A program made the translations under genes and the position numbers. Positions 6,350 through 24,734 of a stretch of DNA of 64,000 nucleotides are shown in pieces (positions within the stretch are counted from its first letter, which is position 1; each line of letters starts with the position of its first letter). The notes beneath the pieces are model-generated. The model was not told the DNA's origin, made no database searches, and worked only from the letters and a program-made list of their open reading frames with translations. Origin of the DNA: Oikopleura dioica (lineage: Eukaryota; Animalia; Chordata); NCBI GenBank assembly GCA_907165135.1, contig OU015567.1, forward strand, positions 13,206,001-13,270,000, read 5' to 3'.

Positions 6350-9300
6350 AGAAATCGCTTGAGTTTATGATGGAAGGTTCCTTTCAGCGCTTTCTTGCCC
6401 AAGTCCAGCTTCTGAAGAAAAAAATATCAAAACCAAGTTTTTCAAAAAAAAAATACCTGTTTGGGCCACAAAAATCCGGCTTTGCGACATTTGAAAGAAG
6501 TAATATGGATGAAATCAATCAAAATCTCATGAATCCGTCCAACATAAGAGCACAAGTTCTCCTCAAGCCAACTTTGAGAATCGAATTTTGATGGAGAAGC
6601 TTTTTTTCGGATTTTTGAAAAAGATCGAGTTTGAAAAAAATGATGTTGAAAAATGTTAAGGAAAAAAAGTTTCGTAAACTGTAAATCCGCTGTCGGATTT
6701 GCTAATGAGCTGTCAACGCCGAAAAAAGTTCACGAATCGGAGCTTTTCTAAAAAACTTGCTCTAAAAATCCATTTCCTTTTAGATCATCCTCGATTTCGA
6801 TCGTCAAAAGATCGACTTCGGCCACGGCTTTGTTTTGCGTTTGAATATTTTGAACTATGATCGCCTCCTGTTCTGAAGAGGGCAATAAGACCCTCTCTAT
6901 CCAGACACAGTGATAAGCAATATAGGGACACTTGTGATAAATTTCTTTACGAAGAGACTTTCCAAAAACAAGCTTGATCAAACACGTTCCTAAACGCAAT
7001 TCGCTTTCGTAACGGCTAGTAGCCAAGGTCACCGATTGTTGACTGCAGCGTTTCCTGAAAAAAAATTTTCACCGACATTTATGAACAAACAATTATAAGC
7101 AGCAGAGATTGATAGCATCAGTGACCTGTCTGCTTGTAACTGACGCATTAGTCGTTTGATAAAAACAGTTAGTACAGCATAATTACGCTCACTTACATAG
7201 ATGAACTCTTTGGCCCGTGAACTTCCGCCATTTTAGTCAGCTTCCACTGATAACGCGCTATCATGTGGGCCCGGGAGAATCTAAGCATGCAAAAAATGAA
7301 AAGCGATCCCGTAATGCACAAATAATTATTACCTCTTGATGAGTGAGCTTTTGAAGCTCTCTGAAAGAACATGAGAGTGGTAAATGCGGAAGAAAACGTT
7401 GTCTAGCGCTCTTATTCCAGGATTTCTTATTTCAACTTCGATCCAATCAGAGAGCGAGATTAATCCTTAAAGCGCCACCTATGCGTACTTGACTTGAAAA
7501 TTGAAAATAAGTTTTTCTCAAGAAATCCTTAAAAGCGTCAGTGGCTGAGTTCGTCGACAACCAACGCCATAATCTTTGAATCCATATCTGCACAAGCACT
7601 GAGCCCCAACTGGTTCAGCGTTGACATCTGCGCATGAAATTCCATCTGATGGGTCGAAAGAATTGTCCGTCTTCAAACTTTCTTCCACGGCTACTTCTGG
7701 GTCGGACTCAGATTCGACCTGGTAGCCATTTTCGTCGAGCAAGAGGTTGAATCGTTCCAAGAAATCCTCAAATCAGTAAGAACTTGGTGATATAAGAGGA
7801 AAGGTTACCGAGACATTGAGTAATCTCAAGCTCTGAATTTTATCCTTTTCGAGCTTTTCCTCGAGGTAGATTTCCGATTCGATATGATAGTCTTCAATAT
7901 TCGACAGGTCAGCTGTTCTTCGTCGTCTTGCAGTTGTTGGTTGGACGTTGATCATGATGTTATAACTATTAATTGTGTTAGAATCTGATAATTTACGAGG
8001 AGTTAATAATGTTCAGGCGCTAGAGTATAATCCTTACGAGGAAGGGGGGGAAGTTTGGTGGGTATCGTAAATTCAAACATTTTTTAATATAAATTAATAA
8101 GGAATTTTCCTTTTTTATGGTCTTCAATTTGTTACTTTACCTGCCCAGATAAGAACCAATACTTTCCAGAGCATCGCGTATTCCCGACGTAATCATGTCT
8201 AAACACCTTTTTAGAACCTTTTTGTGTCAATACAATTCCTGAAGTGAGCAATATACATCGGCGTTAATTGTCTGATAAGTTTTTAGAACTCCAAAGTCGT
8301 GGGAACGCTCAAACGCACCGGCAGAAGAAAGTAACTCGAAGAAAAACTCATTACTGAGTTCCTCTTATCGCGTGCGCAATGAGAGCGGGTGGTTAAAACG
8401 TGGCTCGAGAAAGAAGGTACTGTATCGTACTATTTACTGTCTTGCAGTCATTTTTAGAGGGGGCAGTAATTACTTGAATTCATGTCCTTGATGATAACTA
8501 ATTTTCCTCTTGAGGTCTTATTCATGATTGTTACGTAGACTCGAGATACGGACAACGCTGGTCCAAGATTGTCAATTAGGAACCCGAAAAATCCGCCATT
8601 TGCTCAGATTGGAATTGGATCTCTAATAGAAGCTTGAACTTGTCGTTTTACTCACCAAATAGAATACATGTGAAAAAACTGATAAGAGAAGATAACATAC
8701 ATACCTATATTATCATCAGTTGAAGAATTGTACGTCGCGTTGGTGGAGAAACTGACCGTCAGGTCAAAGGACATGGTCACGTTATTAGTAACGATGGCGA
8801 AACAGCTCGACGCCGCGTTGCAAGACTAAAAAGAGTTTATCACGATAAAAAATGTCAAACCGCCGTCCAATTCTGTAAGAAAGAAAAACACCCACCGCAA
8901 GCTGTATTGGACAGAATTAAATTAAATAAACTTCTCTCCCGCTCTTATCGCGCAAAAGTTCAAACGCTCGGAATTTTATACCTCCGCGCTCCTACCTCAG
9001 TTACAGTTCGTGTCGAGCCGACTCCGCAGTTGTCCGTGTTGCAGACTTGGGTGCGAGTTCGAACTCCGCCATATCTTTTCAGGGGCTAGAAAGAAGCCCC
9101 TTTTGAGGGTGGTTTTCTACATTGAATAGAAATATCTAGCCCTTTCCCCACAAGAAACAGAACACGTGGACCAGCTTTCATTATCGACAAAAGTCTAAAT
9201 AGAAAAATAAATGAAGAAGACATTGATAATATTATTTTGCGTTACCCAATCCACGACAGACTCATTTGAGAATCCAGCTGTTGTGAAATTATCAGAAAGT

Positions 9301-16293: not shown

Positions 16294-16629
16294 ATGGACG
16301 GCATCTGTCAAGAATTTATTCGCGCCCAAGAGCGAGGCGATACCTACGTTTACGCCGATATTGAATACGTAGATGAGGTGGTAAACGCGGAGGCCGCGGA
16401 AGAGACTGACGGAGAAGGCAGTGAAGAAATAATCGTTGAAACTGCCGAAGAATGTACCGACGAGTCTGACGACGACTCTGACGATGAAAGTAGCGAAGAC
16501 GATGGCAATGAGACAGAGGACGAGTCTGATGAACAAAGGAGCGAAGACGATGGCGATAAAACAGAAGACGAGTCTGAGGATGTCGATATTCGTATTCCTG
16601 AAGCCTCGGAATACGACTTTCTGTGTTAG
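16294..16629 (+). CDS. Small acidic low-complexity protein (Asp/Glu-rich); possible upstream exon at ~16020-16177
   Basis: 111-aa ATG-initiated ORF with coding-like D/E codon usage. The link to the upstream open segment is blocked by in-frame stops unless spliced differently. Confidence 0.35.
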   Translation: MDGICQEFIRAQERGDTYVYADIEYVDEVVNAEAAEETDGEGSEEIIVETAEECTDESDDDSDDESSEDDGNETEDESDEQRSEDDGDKTEDESEDVDIRIPEASEYDFLC

Positions 16630-16841
16630 TCTTGCTGACCCGAATAAAATAGTACAAAATATACAGTTGAGAAATTTTTGCATATTCAATCGACAATTTA
16701 ATTGTCAATTAGCTTTCGGCCAGGTGGCACATCAAAAGTACTAATCTAGACGGTATCTTTGAGTCCATCAAGCGCGTGTAAAATGAGGAACTACACACCA
16801 GCTGTTCCGTAATGAGTCGTCGCGAAAGCCCTTTAACTTTC

Positions 16842-16928
16842 GATTGGCTTCTCCTGTCCTCAAAAGCGCGATTTCAAGATGGGATTCCGTTTGATATCAG
16901 ACTGCGCCATCCTTGAGAAAATATAAAA
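16842..16928 (+). promoter_or_regulatory. Putative core promoter (reverse CCAAT + TATA) of the bHLH-WRPW gene
   Basis: attgg at 16842-16846 and tataaaa at 16922-16928, ~90 nt upstream of ATG 17017. AATAAA follows the ORF at 17702-17707. Confidence 0.45.
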
Positions 16929-17016
16929 CCGAGGCGACATAACCAGGCAACTCATATCATTCCAGATACAAACAACAAAAAAGAAACAATCAATCTCATT
17001 TTATAAAGTCGAGAAC

Positions 17017-17679
17017 ATGAACACCCCACGAACCAGCGGCAACGATTTCTCCAAGAAATCACGAGTCAAGTTGAACGAGCGCTTCTCGAGACTTCGAGTC
17101 ATTGTCGAAAAGCGTTTTCCAGAGATTCACGACTGGAACAGATTCCGCATTCTCGACGCTGCCATTGCCTTGCTCGGCGGTAAGCCACTCTCTGCCAACC
17201 CCACAGAGCGTCGGACTGCCATGAACAACCAAGAAGCCTGCGCGTATTACAGAAACAAGCTCAAGAACTGCTTCGAAATCCTCAAGCAAACGCTCGACAC
17301 CGAAGGCTTTATCAGCGCTGGAACAACTCGTCAACTTAACACTCGAGCAGGATTGCTGGAGTTTACGATCGACTGCCTCGTCACAAAGTTCGGCGAGCCC
17401 GACGAATTGAGAATCGATTTTTTGCCAACTCCTATCGTCCGAAGATCACCCAAGAAACGACGCTCCACTGACTCTTGCGAATTTACTCCTCCAGCTAAAC
17501 GACCCTCATCAATCAACTTCACTCCCTCGCCAGCTTCTTCATCTTCTGGCTCCCTTCAGCTCTCTCCCGAACACGAGCAGCTCCTGCAGAAACTGCGAAT
17601 CGCATATTTCTTATCTAACCTTTCTGGCAAAACTGCATTCAACCCTGCTCTTGACTTGAACATCTGGCGCCCATGGTGA
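17017..17679 (+). CDS. Intronless protein with two tandem bHLH-like domains and C-terminal WRPW (Hairy/E(spl)-type Groucho-binding repressor)
   Basis: Domain 1: KKSRVKLNERFSRLRVIV...NRFRILDAAIALL. Domain 2: YYRNKLKNCFEILKQTL...TRAGLLEFTIDCL. The protein ends ...NIWRPW*. TATA and polyA signals flank the ORF. Confidence 0.85.
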   Translation: MNTPRTSGNDFSKKSRVKLNERFSRLRVIVEKRFPEIHDWNRFRILDAAIALLGGKPLSANPTERRTAMNNQEACAYYRNKLKNCFEILKQTLDTEGFISAGTTRQLNTRAGLLEFTIDCLVTKFGEPDELRIDFLPTPIVRRSPKKRRSTDSCEFTPPAKRPSSINFTPSPASSSSGSLQLSPEHEQLLQKLRIAYFLSNLSGKTAFNPALDLNIWRPW

Positions 17680-17803
17680 ACAATTATTCTTTGTAAATAG
17701 AAATAAAATGTATTGGAATAACCAAATTTTGTTTTGTTTGCGTGATGTTTCCATGGTTTATTATCCGTTATGAAATGGTGAGAGTTAGCAGTGAGGTGAA
17801 TTT

Positions 17804-20800
17804 TCAGAGATTTAGCTGAAAAAGCAGGCGGTGAAAGACAGCGAAAATTGCGGAATTCTCCGTTAGTCCGATTCCGATATCGCGCTTTGTGACGTTTTTC
17901 TGGCTTGAAAGATATATCTCCACGTACTTATAGACGATTAGCAAGTTATTACCAAAACTATTGACTTACACAGAAGTAATATCCAGTGAATCTAAGGCAG
18001 TCTTCAGTATGCTCTTCCATTCTATGCGACTTCAAAAACTCGCGGATTTTGTCCCGTGAATTGAGTTTCTCTGTTTTTCCGGTGCCGGCTGTTTCGGAGT
18101 AAAGTCGCTTTGCGATCTCTCTTCTTGGATTGAGCTTGTTTATGAACTCAGGACTAGAATTTAAATAAGTTGGAAATAAGTAAAGAAGCGTAGTTTACTT
18201 GTATGGCTTGTTCCCTTCAATGCCCATGATGGGGATGATCTTGGACTTGTAGATATCCCATATTTGAGGGAGGCATTGATTGCAATCCAGCCAGACGGCG
18301 CCGAACATAGATTCGAATACGTCACCAAACCATTTGGGAATGTCGAGAAGATAAGCTAAAACAGAGTTATTTCATGACTAGTTGAAAATTTCGCCACTGA
18401 GAGTACGACTTACGGCAAGAATACTCCTTCGCTCGGTTTACGGTCTTATCAGTCCATTCCATAACGTTGAGAACACGCTGCAAGTCAGGATTCAAGGGAA
18501 CGCCTCGTTCCTGCTTGTTGAGCAGATTCTTGAACTCTTCGAGTTTGTGCATCGCAGAGATGTGATCCTTCGCGGCGCTCGCTTTCATCAACGTCGATTG
18601 TGGTAATCCCATGCAAAACGCCAACGATCCAAAAAGGTTATTCGAAGTGATTGCTTGCTTCAAATCGGTAAGCTCTCCAGAATCGAGTGAAGCCGACCTT
18701 CGATTGAAGAGCTCATCAACGACCAAATAATCCAAAATCGCATCACCAAGGAATTCAAGCCGCTCATAATTGTCTTTGGGATCTTTTGTGAACTTCTTTT
18801 TCGCAAGCGCGAGTCTGCAAAGATGAGGTGAAATGAATTCATACTGAAGCTCATTCTGAAGGTCCTTGATGATTTTATCTGTCTTTGAATCGGGCTCCAC
18901 TAGTTCAGATTTGTAAGTCATGTGATCTTCCCCAAATGCGGCTCTAGCTTCGTAGGCATTTTCTGGCCAGAATTCTGGAGGGTGGGTGATGAGGCAATCG
19001 CCCTGTACAGTTCGCTTCCTGCGAATTCCTTCCAAGTATTCAGGGTTACTAATGAGTGTATCCATGTAGAGCTGATTCAGCATCCAGACAAATCGAGCAG
19101 CCATTTTCTCCCCGCCAGTCACCAGGTATGCTCCGATAAGCGATTCGATTACGTCGGCGGTTTTCTTGTCGACGAGTTTGTTAATGCTATCGATCGTCAT
19201 ATAGTTGAAGTGGGAAGGACGGACGGTCTCGCTGGTAAATTCATCGGAAATCCGAGGGAAGATTTCTGTTTCATCCTGGTTATCGTCTGTCAGAGCGTGA
19301 TTCAAGGTGTAAACCCATCCTGGCGCTCGTAGAATCCCACGTCCCTTCTGACTGAGATCGTGACAGTTCATATAGCGGGGGATCTGGAGGCAACTTCCAT
19401 CAGAAAGCTTGAGTTTGAACAGCTTTAGAAAATTTGCGTTGGAAATATATGCTCCACGGGCGCTCGTCAGTTCTCCATCTGTAAAATAACTGTACTTCTC
19501 GTAAAGAACACGAGTACAGGCGATTTTAATGAATGAATCGCCGAAAAACTCGAGTCGCTCAAGATTGAAAAAGTCATTTGCGGTTCGTTGAGTAAGTGCG
19601 CGTAGAAGAAGGGATGGAGGAGGAGCGAAACACTCGCGAGTGATAAAGTCAATCGGTGGGTCGGTAGCTTTTCGCTCGATTCTCTCAAAACATTTGTGGA
19701 TCTTCAGCTGGTCTTCGCTCTCATTCTTCAAGGACAGAACAGTATTTGTCTCTTCAGAATCTGTATCTGTTTCGCACTCTGCCGTGAATATTGCCGCATC
19801 TTTTTGAATGAGTGAAAACCAGTCTTTGCAGTGACTTTGAATTACTAATCGATTGATCGCCTGCTGCACAAGACTTTCATATGCTTCTTCCCTCGCCTCG
19901 CCTTCTTTTTTGTTTTCATTGAATTTTCCAAATGATTTGAAGAGCTTCAATGATTCATCGACGATTCCAGGTGTCTTTCCATCTTTATACCAAGGAATGA
20001 AAGTGCCAGGGTGCTCCACTTGCTGTTTTCCGAACAGTTCTAGCTCCTTTTCGCCGTACCACTCGATTTCCCGGTCGAAATGATCCTTGTCCGAAAACTC
20101 TTCTGATGAGGGTTTTGACCAGCAAGATATTTCCGTGTACCGAGGAGGAGTTTTCTTCGGATTGACGCGTTTTAAATACCATGCTTGTTTTTCTTGGCAG
20201 TTGATCGTGTTGCTGAGTAAACCAAAATCAAGATTTTCCTGCTTCTGTGGAATTGATAGGACCTTGTGATCAACGATTTTATCTACATGTGGCGGGAGAT
20301 AAAAAGCTTTCTCACCGAAGACTGGCGGAGGATAAACTGGACCAAGTGAGTCGAAAAGTTTCAGGAACTTTTCTTGATCTGTTGGAGCAGGAAGTTTTTT
20401 CTCGGATATCTTGATCTTCTTGTAGGAATAGTCAGTCCCTTCTTTCGAGTCACCAGTAAATTCATCATCTCTTGCGACATATCCAGAAGGAGCGGCTGTG
20501 GGAGGCAGATTTGTGAAGAGGAAGGTATCATGTCTGGCTTCAGTTCCTTCGACCAGGCCTTTGAATCTCTTGATAGAAGTCGTTTTGTACGTAGTAAGAG
20601 GTGATTTGGTTAGCATCTTGTAAACTTGTAGTGGTGATAGTCCAGGCTTGCTATGATTGTTTCCTTCATCGAGAGTCGGAAAAACCCTACCGTTGTACTC
20701 TTTCGCGAATTTGACACGAAGTTCCTCGGCATTTAGCAATTGAATGAGACGAACCGTGATTCCAGGCAATTTCGCTGCTTGAATAAACAGGTTCTTTGGA

Positions 20801-23800
20801 AGGAAGTGATACTCAATATGCTCCATGAAAAGGAATTTTGTTTGCTTTTTGCCACCTTCTGGAGCGTGTCTTGTGATCATCGTTTGCCTTGAATTATTGA
20901 AGGGGTCGCTGATCTTCACAAGTTTTCCCTTTGCGTTGAACTCAGGCTTTATCCTCTTATGATAATCGCCGTATGGAATGGGCTCTTTCAAACTTGTATC
21001 CTTCATTGTACCATCTTTATTCGAGAATTCTACAGTCAGATAGAACTTGTCGCACGTGGGTTGCCAGATCAACGAGTCAGGAGTATTGTCGGAAACGGAT
21101 TTTCGATTAAGAATCCGGACATTGTGATCTTGTCTATCGAATGTCTTGTAAAGCTCGCCGTAGAAGCGTCTTTTCTTAGTTGGCTCTGGAACTCGTGGAA
21201 TTCTTGGGTCCATATGTTTGCTGTAGTCTTTGAATAGTTCTTTGACTGGACGTCGCCAAGCGTATTCTGATTCTTGTATCAATTGAGGTGCTTTTATTAT
21301 TTTATTGCCGTAGTAAAAGGTAGCCTCTTCCACCTCCTGTCGCCAGTGTAACTCCCGCCCAACAATGAACTGCTCTTGTTTCGTTGATTGAATGATACCG
21401 AAGCCAAATCCTGCATCTGCCTTCATATACGGTTCATACCAGACACGCTGCTTGTCCCAGTGCTTCTCTTGGATCTTTTCTTCGTGTCTCTTCCTGATCG
21501 CCTTCCCGCTTCTTTTGGGTATTAAAGGATGTGGAGCAGGACCAGTCTTACTGGATTCAAGATTTGCATCGTTCAATAAATTGAGATTTTCTCTCAACCT
21601 TATAATTTTTGTCGTATACGCTTCCCATTCTGCAGTTGGCTCTCCATTCTCATCTTTCTGCGGTGTGAGTTGTCTTCTCTGATTGATTAATCTGTTCATT
21701 TCTGCATCTTTTTTGGCGTGATTTTCGCGTCTCGCTCTGATTATATGCATGCACCTACTTTCAAAGACCTCCATCTCGGTAATTGTAAACCAGTCAATGT
21801 CAAAACCATGCCATGGGAGCTGGCGCTTCGCAAGTGGAACATACAGCAACTGCACTTCACCTTGTCTTACCCACTGTTTCAACTCCCAGTATTCCGGAAC
21901 ACGCTTCTCGGCATTGCCCCAACCAGAAGTGAACTTTTTCGATTCCTTGCTCATCTCTTTTTGAAGATCTCGCTTCTTTTCAAGTGTCATCAGAACGTCG
22001 CTAGCTTGTAAACAATCTTCTCCTAATCCATTGTGTAGTTCTGTAATATTTCTGTAGAAATGTTTCAATTGACTCAATTCCACTTCGTCGAAAACAAGCA
22101 TCGATCTGAGTAGGGTCACTTCAACATCAAGGGCGTATGTGGTTTTTTGCTTCTTCGGATGATATACTGAAAATGGCGCAACCGAAACTATCGGCTTGGC
22201 AACAAGAATGCCAAAGGCCTGATCGCTAAAATCGTGAGGAAAAGACGCTTCCGACGAATTTTTGATGTTGAAGTTATCGCAGTAGCGTCTTGTCTTGCTG
22301 ATACTGACTAAATAAAGGTAACAAGGCTTGCCAGGTTCAATTTGGCCTCCTTGAAGACATTCTGGGAAAATTCGTCGGTATTGCTTGTCGTTTTTAATTG
22401 AGTACTTGCTCTTGAAATTTTCGCTCTCATGGAAAGGATGCTCGGGTAGATCAGGCTCGAATTCTCTTGGACCTCTTGTATGATACTTTTCGCGTTTTTC
22501 CTCAACCTCGGTTCTCGGATTTTTCAAGAGGAAGAAATCATTAGGATTCTCTTTCTTGAACCTTGTGAGGGCAATTTTGCACACATTCTCAACCGCATCT
22601 TCTTCGTTTTGAAAGGTGTCACTTATCATAACCTTCTTGGACACTGGGAAGTCAAATGGAAATCCAGCGGTAGCCATCCACCCTCCATTTCCATCCTTCG
22701 CTGTGTTGACTTGTAATTTCGCGAAAATATCCGGAATGCAAACTTTACTGACAACATCTCTTAGAATTTCTTTCGCCGTTTTATCGTCGGGAAATCCATC
22801 CATTATTCCTTCGTCCGCTTTTTCGATTCTTGTTTCCGACGACTCAAGCGGATCAGTAAAGATGTCACTCTTACTTTTAATTTCAGGTTCTTTGCAGCCA
22901 CCAGAACTAAATCGCTCGACTTCTTTTCTAACCTCATTGAACTTGTCATGAGTACTTAGGTCGACAACAAGTTGTATCATGCCATCTCTAACCGGGAGGT
23001 CAAAGAAATCTGCACTCGGCTCTTCGAAACGATAGCCAAGGCTGATCGGACACTTTCCCTGTGTGACAATCCCTTCAATTACGTAGTTCGGAACGCTAGA
23101 AGTCGTGATCAACAACCCTGAGCGATTTTTGCTATCCATGAAGAACTCCAAACTTTCTTTCATCGTCTTCGCATAATCTTTGTCTCTCTTCGCAAACACC
23201 TTTTCGTTGATCTCGTCTACAAGTCGTGGATTTCTCATTGAAGATTTGAAAGGCGTGCCGAGTTGGAACATCTTAGAATCATGGAAGAAGGGAATGATGC
23301 ATGCGAAAAGGGGGAACTCCCGCTCCGTCATGAGCTTCAAGGCCATCTGAAACGAATAGCACAGGACTTCGCTGTTGAAGCTGACGATGTACTTGCCAAA
23401 TCCTTCCCCAACGAGTTCTTCTACTGGCTTTTCGTATGGATTGTACGCACTTTTACTTTCAACAGGCTTCTTGATCTTTTTTACATCAAATTGACTTAAC
23501 CAAGCTGGTAGATCATCGTCAGCATTATCGTGGAACTCATCCAGTTCGCATTCCCTCTTTCTTCTTTCATAATCAGAATCAGGCTCTTTTTCCGAATCAT
23601 CATGATCGGACGCTCGATCCATCTCAAGATTCTCTTTAGGAGGGTTGAAGCGTTCCCGAAGGTTCCATAGAAACATCCAGAGCCTGTCGCTTAGCAAACA
23701 CTCTTTCTCTTCGATTTCATCAAGCTCGGAAATGATCGCTTTGCAAGAAAAGAAAGTCGTCAACACCATTTCGTAAATAGTATTGACCATCATGTTCGTT

Positions 23801-24734
23801 TCTATCTTATTCACCAGTTGAGAATTATTGTAGCTCGTTGCAAGAAGAGTAAGTCGCAGTTGCAAGTCTGGAAACCATCTGATCAAACCGTATGTACCGA
23901 AGTTGTCCAAGATTTTTAAGCAATCGCCCAGTATCTCATCCGCCTTATGGACCATGTAATCATCATGCGGTTCAACAGTCACTTCACCAGGAGAGTCGTC
24001 GATCAGTTTGACGAACTCATGGTCTTCATCTTTACAGTTGCGATAATAGGAATAAGATGTTTCTGTCTCGTGATGACTAAATTCGTGATGCTGGAAGAGC
24101 GCGGCGATGTCTTGCCTAGTTGTTCCGAAAAGATCCCGCAGTCGCTCTTTCGCACCGGTGAACTCAGGGACGCTTCGATGTCTTTTGCATTTTTCGATCA
24201 CAGGCAAGACGATTTCGGCTTTCTTCTCAGTTGAATAGCCTACATCATTTTTCGACAGGAAAATAACGATGTCCGGACGAACCCCTTGCTTCTCCATTTG
24301 CCTTTTTACGTCAAACTCTTTCGTCACAACGAAAATCGTTTTACCAATCTCTTCTCCATACGATCTCAGTTCGGACGCTATTTTCTGGAAGTACTTCTGC
24401 TTATGAGACTCAAAAATGGGATATTTTTCTTCTTTCTTGCTCTCCTCCGTCCCTCTTATTTCATCCCTCAGTTTTTCCTTCAAGTTTTGTTCCATAGATC
24501 TATCGAACATCACTTTGATCCGCTTGGAGATGTGAGTGTAGGCCTTGACATAGGTAATGATTCTAAAGGATCATATTCTCGTCCGGGCATTTATAGTTCG
24601 CAAACTCACCTTTTTGAAATTTGCGTATTAGTTTCATTGAATAATAAGGTCGGATGCTGGTGAATAATAAGATTGTTGTAGAAAACAACATTATTGCTCA
24701 AAAAATCCTTATTTCGCGTTAGAATTTCCGCCAT
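17804..24734 (-). CDS. DICER1: Dicer (degenerate helicase, DUF283, PAZ/connector, RNase IIIa and IIIb, divergent dsRBD); 5 exons
   Basis: RNase IIIa ERLEFFGDSF...ADVIESLIGAY; RNase IIIb ERLEFLGDAIL plus spliced PKWFGDVFESMFGAVWLD; connector LPGITVRLIQLLNAEELR; DUF283-like fold. GT-AG introns at 24563-24609, 18356-18413, 18154-18198 and 17927-17969 give a continuous frame from ATG 24734 to TGA 17804. Confidence 0.95.

Follow-up and report, generated by a model that had tools for sequence, protein, structure and literature searches.

The stretch of DNA analysed here (the window) comprises 64,000 nucleotides of the chordate Oikopleura dioica, a larvacean tunicate (GCA_907165135.1, contig OU015567.1, positions 13,206,001 to 13,270,000). 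On its forward strand, positions 17017..17679 hold a single-exon coding sequence (CDS) with an intact open reading frame (ORF) of 220 amino acids plus a stop codon, which encodes a relative of the HES repressors. The protein starts with MNTPRTSGNDFSKKSR and ends in NIWRPW, directly followed by the stop codon. The combination of two helix-loop-helix (HLH) units with a C-terminal WRPW motif, and the assignment of the protein to a family with this layout, are regarded as very probable. The initial annotation of this DNA had described the gene as intronless and as ending in WRPW. Both descriptions stand, the latter from the reading of the ORF and the former from orthologues that are collinear over their full length, with the orthologue from the Norwegian O. 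dioica reference annotated as a single exon. The DNA pattern for WRPW plus stop occurs once in the 64-kb window, compared to 0.00 expected occurrences.

The first HLH unit (17047..17178, forward strand; residues 11-54) consists of helix 1 (residues 13-33) and helix 2 (residues 42-54). It is headed by a basic-region stub, F-S-K-K-S-R, with Ser and Arg at positions 9 and 13 of the standard basic HLH (bHLH) numbering, which was anchored on L/V16-N17 and checked against HMMER alignments to MAX and plant MYC2. The Pfam model PF00010 matches 15 of 18 isolated unit-1 pieces, with a best expectation value (E) of 8e-5. Applied to the whole protein, the same model reaches 18.4 bits in the window protein, which is below the gathering cut-off of 20.7, and 25-26 bits in the orthologues P0002, P0004, and P0005, which is above the cut-off and covers profile positions 2-47. 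A profile of unit 1 matches MAX chains in the PDB in register. Unit 1 is followed by a linker (17179..17226, forward strand; residues 55-70) that is variable in sequence as well as in length, with 17-28 residues between the anchors L53 and N71 in 63 family members.

The second HLH unit (17227..17391, forward strand; residues 71-125) is composed of helix 1 (residues 71-95) and helix 2 (residues 104-125). It occupies the slot in which HES proteins have the Orange domain, and its head reads N5-K6-E7-x-C9-x-x-Y12-R13. This unit had been called bHLH-like instead of Orange on the basis of two strings, both of which are present, RNKLKNCFEILKQTL at residues 79-93 and TRAGLLEFTIDCL at residues 109-121, and the assignment is upheld by Pfam searches with isolated pieces, by profile-profile alignment with hhalign, and by a profile search of the PDB. 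In the Pfam searches, 12 of 18 isolated unit-2 pieces match PF00010 (best E 9e-4, profile positions 12-47 of 53) with scores of 11-17 bits, which lie below the Pfam cut-off in every member examined, while none of the 18 pieces matches the Orange model PF07527 (Hairy_orange) at E up to 10. With 15 and 12 matching pieces, respectively, units 1 and 2 resemble HLH to about the same degree. The Orange segment of HES-1, which served as a control (43 residues, identical to PDB chain 7c4o_A), scores 75.5 bits on PF07527 and has no HLH match. Further control sequences, namely the HEY1 Orange domain, the HES-1 bHLH domain, and MAX, were taken from PDB-search outputs.

With hhalign, unit 2 aligns with unit 1 over 43-44 columns with the helices in register (Prob 93-95%, P 4e-7 to 6e-8). 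The score of this alignment is 33.7, compared to at most 22.9 for 200 column shuffles of unit 1 and 12.9 for the reversed profile. Unit 2 also aligns in register with the single HES-1 bHLH (2mh3) and MAX sequences over 44 and 37 columns, respectively, at P ~9e-5. Its comparison with an alignment of the HES-1 and HEY1 Orange domains yields one aligned column at P 0.19; this Orange profile was built from two sequences only, and the full Pfam Orange model is likewise negative. Orange and bHLH domains do not cross-match in the hhalign control. When the whole-family profile is compared with the same HES-1 and HEY1 alignment, no Orange-like stretch is found anywhere along the protein (P up to 0.25). 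The unit-2 profile retrieves weak but in-register matches to the HES-1 bHLH domain (2mh3) and the plant MYC2 bHLH domain from the PDB sequences, and it does not retrieve the Orange chains 7c4o and 2db7, which are both present there; a phmmer search of the PDB sequences with the whole protein gives no match. As judged by these profile comparisons, unit 2 is of the HLH type and has no detectable Orange character. The description of its spacing as Myc/Mad/Mnt-like is not specific, since unit 2 matches the HES-1 bHLH domain and MAX equally well.

The alternative that unit 2 is a strongly diverged Orange domain, and that the protein is an ordinary bHLH-Orange-WRPW HES protein of a fast-evolving lineage, has already been largely refuted by these results and is considered very improbable. 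According to this explanation, the likeness to HLH would reflect what any two amphipathic helices have in common. It would account for the location of unit 2 exactly at the Orange position, it agrees with the fast evolution of Oikopleura proteins, and YRxKLxxxFExLKxxL can be overlaid by eye on YRAGFSECMNEVTRFL. It is at odds with the Pfam and hhalign results and with the lack of cross-matching in the control. Furthermore, unit 2 bears the signatures LN..F..L(K/R) and R-A-G-I-L-E-A, and its first helix comprises 25 residues and is thus longer than the Orange helix. An origin of unit 2 as a specific internal duplicate of unit 1 has been rejected as unproven and is plausible only. The unit-2 profile has a median score of 26 on unit-1 sequences versus 23-24 on HES-1 and MAX; unit 2 is therefore hardly nearer to unit 1 than to HES-1 or MAX, and an internal duplication is not demonstrated.

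The AlphaFold model of the whole protein has four confident helices (residues 13-33, 42-54, 71-95, and 104-125) and a disordered middle part. For residues 1-130, modelled with a 43-sequence alignment, a compact two-unit module is predicted with a predicted local distance difference test (pLDDT) score of 84.3 and a predicted template modelling (pTM) score of 0.76; in the linker, pLDDT drops to 65-67. The intramolecular four-helix bundle proposed in the initial annotation is compatible with this predicted compact four-helix module.

Protein searches retrieve relatives of the same length with 65-67% identity from O. dioica lineages and a more distant full-length relative with 43% identity. The orthologue from the Norwegian reference is CBY21107.1 (E4WVF4_OIKDI), whose sole public name is the automatic designation 'BHLH domain-containing protein'. 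Because the closest proteins, including CBY21107.1, are only 65-67% identical, the window is, by this measure, from another, strongly diverged O. dioica lineage relative to the Norwegian reference. The CDS shares 69% nucleotide identity with that of CBY21107.1, with 0.225 nonsynonymous substitutions per site (dN) and a saturated value of 1.67 synonymous substitutions per site (dS), so that dN/dS is ~0.13. Judged from this ratio, the two-HLH gene is under purifying selection; together with the intact ORF and the collinear family members described below, this identifies 17017-17679 as a real gene.

An exhaustive HMMER search of 1.84 billion representative sequences returned only 20 matches at E<1e-3. 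The 17 full-length matches, which were aligned, and the fragments, which were inspected, all carry the motifs of the two-HLH family itself. A profile word search gave 50 collinear matches, all from the family, with a gap in E from 2e-18 to 0.014; even at E up to 10, this search retrieved family members only and no canonical HES protein. The total comes to at least 63 full-length family proteins of 188-267 amino acids, all of a single layout; their sources are two assemblies of O. dioica and metagenomes of marine plankton (Tara, EMO BON). An N-terminus of 4-17 residues is followed by (D/N)FS(K/R)(K/R)(C/S)R and the first HLH; after the variable linker come NKE(A/L)CxxYR and the second HLH; the C-terminal half contains a KR-rich patch, an S-P motif, a predicted helix, and WRPW or a near variant. 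The family tree has two deep groups with about nine supported subclades, and one gene copy is on record per O. dioica assembly. The short contigs that encode P0006, a near-identical protein, are metagenomic DNA from Tara and not transcripts. Two proteins of GCA_977009715.1 had been considered paralogues of one species, and this reading was withdrawn. One of them, P0005, is also found on a shotgun contig from an EMO BON water sample, and the assembly therefore looks environmental, with its two proteins maybe from different species. An already described orthologue with this architecture had been named in the initial annotation as a refuting finding, but searches of the literature turned up no account of an HES-like or two-bHLH protein from Oikopleura. 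This conserved gene of the HES kind, present in O. dioica and in plankton metagenomes, is apparently undescribed.

The C-terminal part of the protein contains several further conserved elements. A KKRR cluster (17452..17463, forward strand; residues 146-149) is likely a nuclear localisation signal, as judged by its motif; K147 and R148 are invariant in five close orthologues, and the family consensus is PKRxRS. The Ser/Pro-rich segment TPSPASS (17521..17541, forward strand; residues 169-175) is a candidate site of proline-directed phosphorylation, with S171 and P172 being invariant in an 18-member alignment. Ahead of the tail, an amphipathic helix is predicted (17566..17622, forward strand; residues 184-202; AlphaFold pLDDT ~62). 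Its hydrophobic pattern is conserved across the family alignment, and it has no match to Orange in the whole-family profile comparison. The C-terminal WRPW (17665..17676, forward strand) is the Groucho/TLE-binding motif of HES proteins. The exact WRPW terminus is present in 51 of 63 family members; the remainder have the near variants FRPWM/I, WRPWL/V/E/Q, WRAWL, WSPWQ, WQPWL, and WRPF, some of which may bind Groucho more weakly. Shifted tails characterise whole subclades (P0018, P0035, P0036, P0051, P0017, P0019, P0020, P0022, P0025, P0028). Downstream of the CDS, a candidate polyadenylation signal AATAAA is located 23 nucleotides past the stop codon (17702..17707, forward strand; consensus match only).

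The heads of both HLH units differ from those of DNA-binding bHLH proteins. According to residue counts in 43 non-redundant family members, positions 5 and 6 of unit 1 are variable (V/T/N/I at position 6), followed by D/N at position 7, F (43/43) at position 8, S (43/43) at position 9, R/K at position 10, K at position 11, C/S at position 12, and R (43/43) at position 13. In unit 2, the corresponding residues are N (43/43), K (41/43), E, L/A, C (43/43), A/Q, L/F, Y (43/43), and R (43/43). The glutamate that contacts the E-box had been reported as lacking from both units, and this is confirmed by the alignment of Ser12 and Cys75 to bHLH position 9. The net charge over positions 1-13 is +3 in unit 1 and +1 in unit 2, and in some members only 4 residues precede F8, so that half of the basic region of unit 1 is missing. 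DNA-binding bHLH proteins have a net charge of roughly +4 to +6 over these positions. Neither unit shows Glu9 with Arg/Lys-rich flanks, by which the DNA-binding class is recognised, and the HES-type proline at position 6 is present neither in unit 1, which has V/T/N/I, nor in unit 2, which has K. Instead, the normally DNA-facing positions are occupied by invariant hydrophobic or small residues, namely F8, S9, and C12 in unit 1 and C9 and Y12 in unit 2. In our reading, the hydrophobic stripe of helix 1 (positions 9-12-16-20-23-27) is continued in unit 2 by C9 and Y12 and in unit 1 by F8 and C12. We therefore favour heads that have been turned into a packing surface over heads that have been re-tooled for another DNA site. 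Of the two roles suggested in the initial annotation, a bHLH dimer with new DNA specificity or a non-DNA-binding sink, the latter agrees somewhat better with how charged and how hydrophobic the two basic regions are.

The former role has nevertheless to be weighed. As a single-chain bHLH pseudo-dimer, the protein would bind DNA alone with a new, asymmetric non-E-box specificity. Unit 2 would provide the reading head (N5, C9, Y12, R13) and unit 1 a stub that grips phosphate (R/K10, K11, R13, R/K15), the monomer would deliver Groucho, and WRPW would recruit it to the bound sites as in classical HES proteins. Invariant residues at the canonical base- and phosphate-contact positions 5, 9, 12, and 13 point in this direction, as do the modelled residues 71-95, which form one continuous helix resembling a basic region with helix 1, and the predicted compact module with its pTM of 0.76. 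Judged by geometry, a linker of at least 17 residues between the anchors could in principle connect the end of helix 2 with the start of the next basic region. Moreover, bHLH-PAS partners without Glu9 still bind asymmetric half-sites. These arguments are opposed by the low net charges, by the loss of half of the unit-1 basic region in some members, and by C9 and Y12, which in extending the hydrophobic stripe resemble a packing face. On this balance, DNA binding by a pseudo-dimer is possible but rather unlikely. If true, it would represent a natural single-chain form in a chordate, with both HLH units of one molecule folded into a complete four-helix bundle; it would have arisen independently of the nematode REF-1 proteins, in a further animal that develops fast and has a compact genome.

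Upstream of the gene, a promoter block (16730..16985, forward strand) is conserved with ~88% identity to the Norwegian O. dioica locus, so that these ~250 base pairs (bp) are more conserved between the two lineages than the CDS with its 69% nucleotide identity. The block contains, all on the forward strand, TGAGTCCAT (16760-16768), a CAGCTG E-box within CCAGCTG (16799-16804), TAATGAG (16810-16816), CTCCTGT (family form C(T/C)CCTGT) between TAATGAG and the following motif, GCGCCAT (16904-16910), and TATAAAA (16922-16928), which is located 95 nucleotides 5' of the ATG and is a consensus match only. Motif order and similar spacing recur in two metagenome relatives with ~43% protein identity; counterparts of the block are found at positions 7728-7990 of the Norwegian locus (L004), at ~255-430 of locus L002, and at ~2760-2930 of locus L003. 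The initial annotation had noted that no paired Su(H) site was seen in the ~400 bp upstream of the gene. This observation extends to any YGTGRGAA or TGGGAA within 1.3 kb in the window, and neither pattern occurs within 500 bp upstream in four related loci, namely the window, the Norwegian locus, and two metagenome loci. Class-A bHLH activators bind preferentially to CAGCTG. From this conserved E-box and the lack of Su(H) sites, we infer activation by a class-A bHLH factor.

Alternatively, the gene could be controlled directly by Notch through remote or non-canonical Su(H) sites, and its product could work in the manner of the classical HES effectors. In favour of this, regulation by Notch is typical of HES and REF-1 genes (PMC4683635, PMC5882950), and ATGGGATTCC at 16879-16888 is conserved in both O. 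dioica lineages. The ATGGGAT at this site, however, is two positions off the consensus and absent from L002 and L003, the conserved element is an E-box module, and the four loci are devoid of either Su(H) pattern over the distances given above. Direct control by Notch thus appears improbable.

In the explanation proposed here, the protein is a functional, lineage-restricted relative of HES that acts as a repressor by capture. As a whole, we give this explanation an even chance; its capture or adaptor mechanism, taken by itself, is tentative and put at slightly less than that. The WRPW tail would recruit the co-repressor Groucho/TLE as in HES proteins. The two HLH units would form a helical-bundle interaction module, either folded within one chain, as in the AlphaFold model, or paired between chains, and the second HLH unit would take over the stabilising and partner-selecting function of Orange, as has been proposed for REF-1. 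Because Glu9 is lost, the charge is reduced to +3 and +1, and hydrophobic or small residues occupy DNA-facing positions, the protein itself most probably reads neither E-boxes nor N-boxes. It would rather capture other bHLH factors by HLH-HLH contacts and either sequester them or bring Groucho to the DNA that they occupy. The gene would be switched on by a class-A bHLH activator of the proneural or myogenic type rather than directly by Notch/Su(H), and its product would act as a negative-feedback antagonist of this activator.

Several points weigh against this explanation. Taken alone, each HLH unit scores below the Pfam gathering cut-off, and the case for HLH therefore draws on the consistency among family members and on profile-profile scores. 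Searches by structure returned only helical-bundle noise with Foldseek (both models against the PDB), the shape search of the ESM Atlas, and VIA-align. The best structure-search Z of 5.8 belongs to calponin-homology domains, bHLH chains reach a Z of 3.7 at a root-mean-square deviation of 5-8 Å, and the feature search of the ESM Atlas gave no usable match. The high pTM of the monomer can be caused by an obligate dimer interface that has been folded back on itself. The best-conserved residues of the whole protein (N5, K6, C9, Y12, and R13 in unit 2, R13 in unit 1) are located at canonical DNA-contact positions, and their conservation fits an altered DNA specificity as well as a packing surface. 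Groucho binding is predicted from the WRPW motif. Su(H) sites could be located further away or be non-canonical. Finally, four raw-read RNA runs that bear the same species label contain no reads on the gene or on its Dicer neighbour and hence provide no test of expression; these runs probably derive from another O. dioica lineage than the window.

The two-HLH gene is preceded by an ORF on the forward strand (16294-16629) that encodes 111 amino acids with an extremely high content of Asp, Glu, and Ser (…SDDDSDDESSEDDGNETEDESDEQRSEDDGDKTEDESEDVD…). Directly downstream and convergent with the two-HLH gene, a Dicer-like gene is encoded on the reverse strand (18367-24513) as one uninterrupted ORF of 2048 amino acids. 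Between the two genes, at 17801-17834, lie the only RNA matches over a 3.6-kb stretch. These are 11 partial reads that are 90-95% alike, fall on a 34-nucleotide spot, and have identical loose ends on both sides. The spot looks like a short repeat or like a conserved element that is transcribed from elsewhere in another lineage.

Synteny with the Norwegian scaffold is collinear upstream of and up to the two-HLH gene and is broken just after it. On the Norwegian scaffold FN653017.1, a three-exon HES-type gene is located 2.4 kb downstream of the two-HLH orthologue on the opposite strand (L004 11040-11838, reverse strand). Read exon by exon, it encodes an HES-type basic region, KPLMEKRRRERMN, with the family proline (KPLMEKRRR), a helix 2 of the sequence SKLEKADILENAVDYL, and the tail GPFRPWITQ. 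No Pfam Orange domain is on record for it, and even a canonical-type Oikopleura HES protein may thus lack a recognisable Orange domain. A canonical HES-type neighbour of this kind was not found in the 64-kb window. Since Oikopleura retains a canonical-type HES bHLH, the two-HLH gene adds to HES and is not a replacement for it. It has possibly arisen by local duplication.

The HES repressors rank with the best-conserved switches of animal development. A second independent lineage in which WRPW is paired with two HLH units would mean that the replacement of Orange by a second HLH is repeatable and not a nematode oddity. The lineage in question belongs to the chordates, has a compact genome, and develops very fast. 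Oikopleura also has fixed cell lineages. The family offers a natural test case for the function of Orange, for the question of intramolecular dimer formation by tandem HLH units, and for how far a basic region can drift, here from Glu9 to an invariant Ser or Cys, while still being under selection. The conserved E-box promoter is a direct handle on the regulatory loop, and the abundance of the family in ocean metagenomes makes it a possible marker of larvacean-like genomes.

Among known systems, the Hairy/E(spl)/HES proteins share the overall order of parts with the Oikopleura protein. Both are small and nuclear, in the Oikopleura protein by prediction, and have a bHLH-type domain at the N-terminus, another helical module for dimerisation ~15-20 residues further on, a Ser/Pro-rich region, and a C-terminal WRPW. 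In contrast to HES proteins, the Oikopleura protein has no Orange and no Pro6, it has Ser instead of Glu9 and a truncated basic region, and its bHLH is no nearer to HES-1 than to MAX. In addition, its gene has no upstream Su(H) sites, which are typical of HES genes, though not universal. The favoured mechanism, in which other bHLH factors are captured by a protein without a working basic region, resembles that of Id/Extramacrochaete (Emc) and of HES6-type antagonists. Id and Emc, however, have one HLH and no Groucho motif, whereas the Oikopleura protein has two HLH units and WRPW; and their basic regions are absent, whereas the degenerate basic regions of the Oikopleura protein are highly conserved. 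Engineered tethered bHLH dimers, such as the forced dimers MyoD~E47, demonstrate that two units joined by a flexible linker in one chain can fold as an intramolecular dimer. These are artificial and have intact basic regions, whereas the Oikopleura units are natural and their basic regions are degenerate.

The closest parallel in architecture is the REF-1 family of nematodes (Caenorhabditis elegans REF-1 and HLH-25 to HLH-29), whose members are likewise short proteins with two bHLH-type domains and no Orange. The tail of REF-1 is FRPWE, a Groucho-type motif, and some tails of the Oikopleura family (FRPWM/I or WRPWE) resemble it. REF-1 belongs to a different phylum, and no sequence relation beyond generic HLH has been seen, with REF-1 not compared directly. 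As the exhaustive HMMER search returned only proteins with the signature of the Oikopleura family, convergence is the simplest reading, and the two-HLH layout has apparently been reached independently of nematode REF-1, otherwise its sole known instance. REF-1 proteins, with their two bHLH domains and no Orange, are treated as functional homologues of HES proteins (PMC4683635, PMC3606163), and it has been suggested that their second bHLH serves in place of Orange (PMC3606163, PMC4683635). The REF-1 parallel drawn in the initial annotation is thus apt, for two bHLH-type domains and no Orange are also found in the Oikopleura protein.

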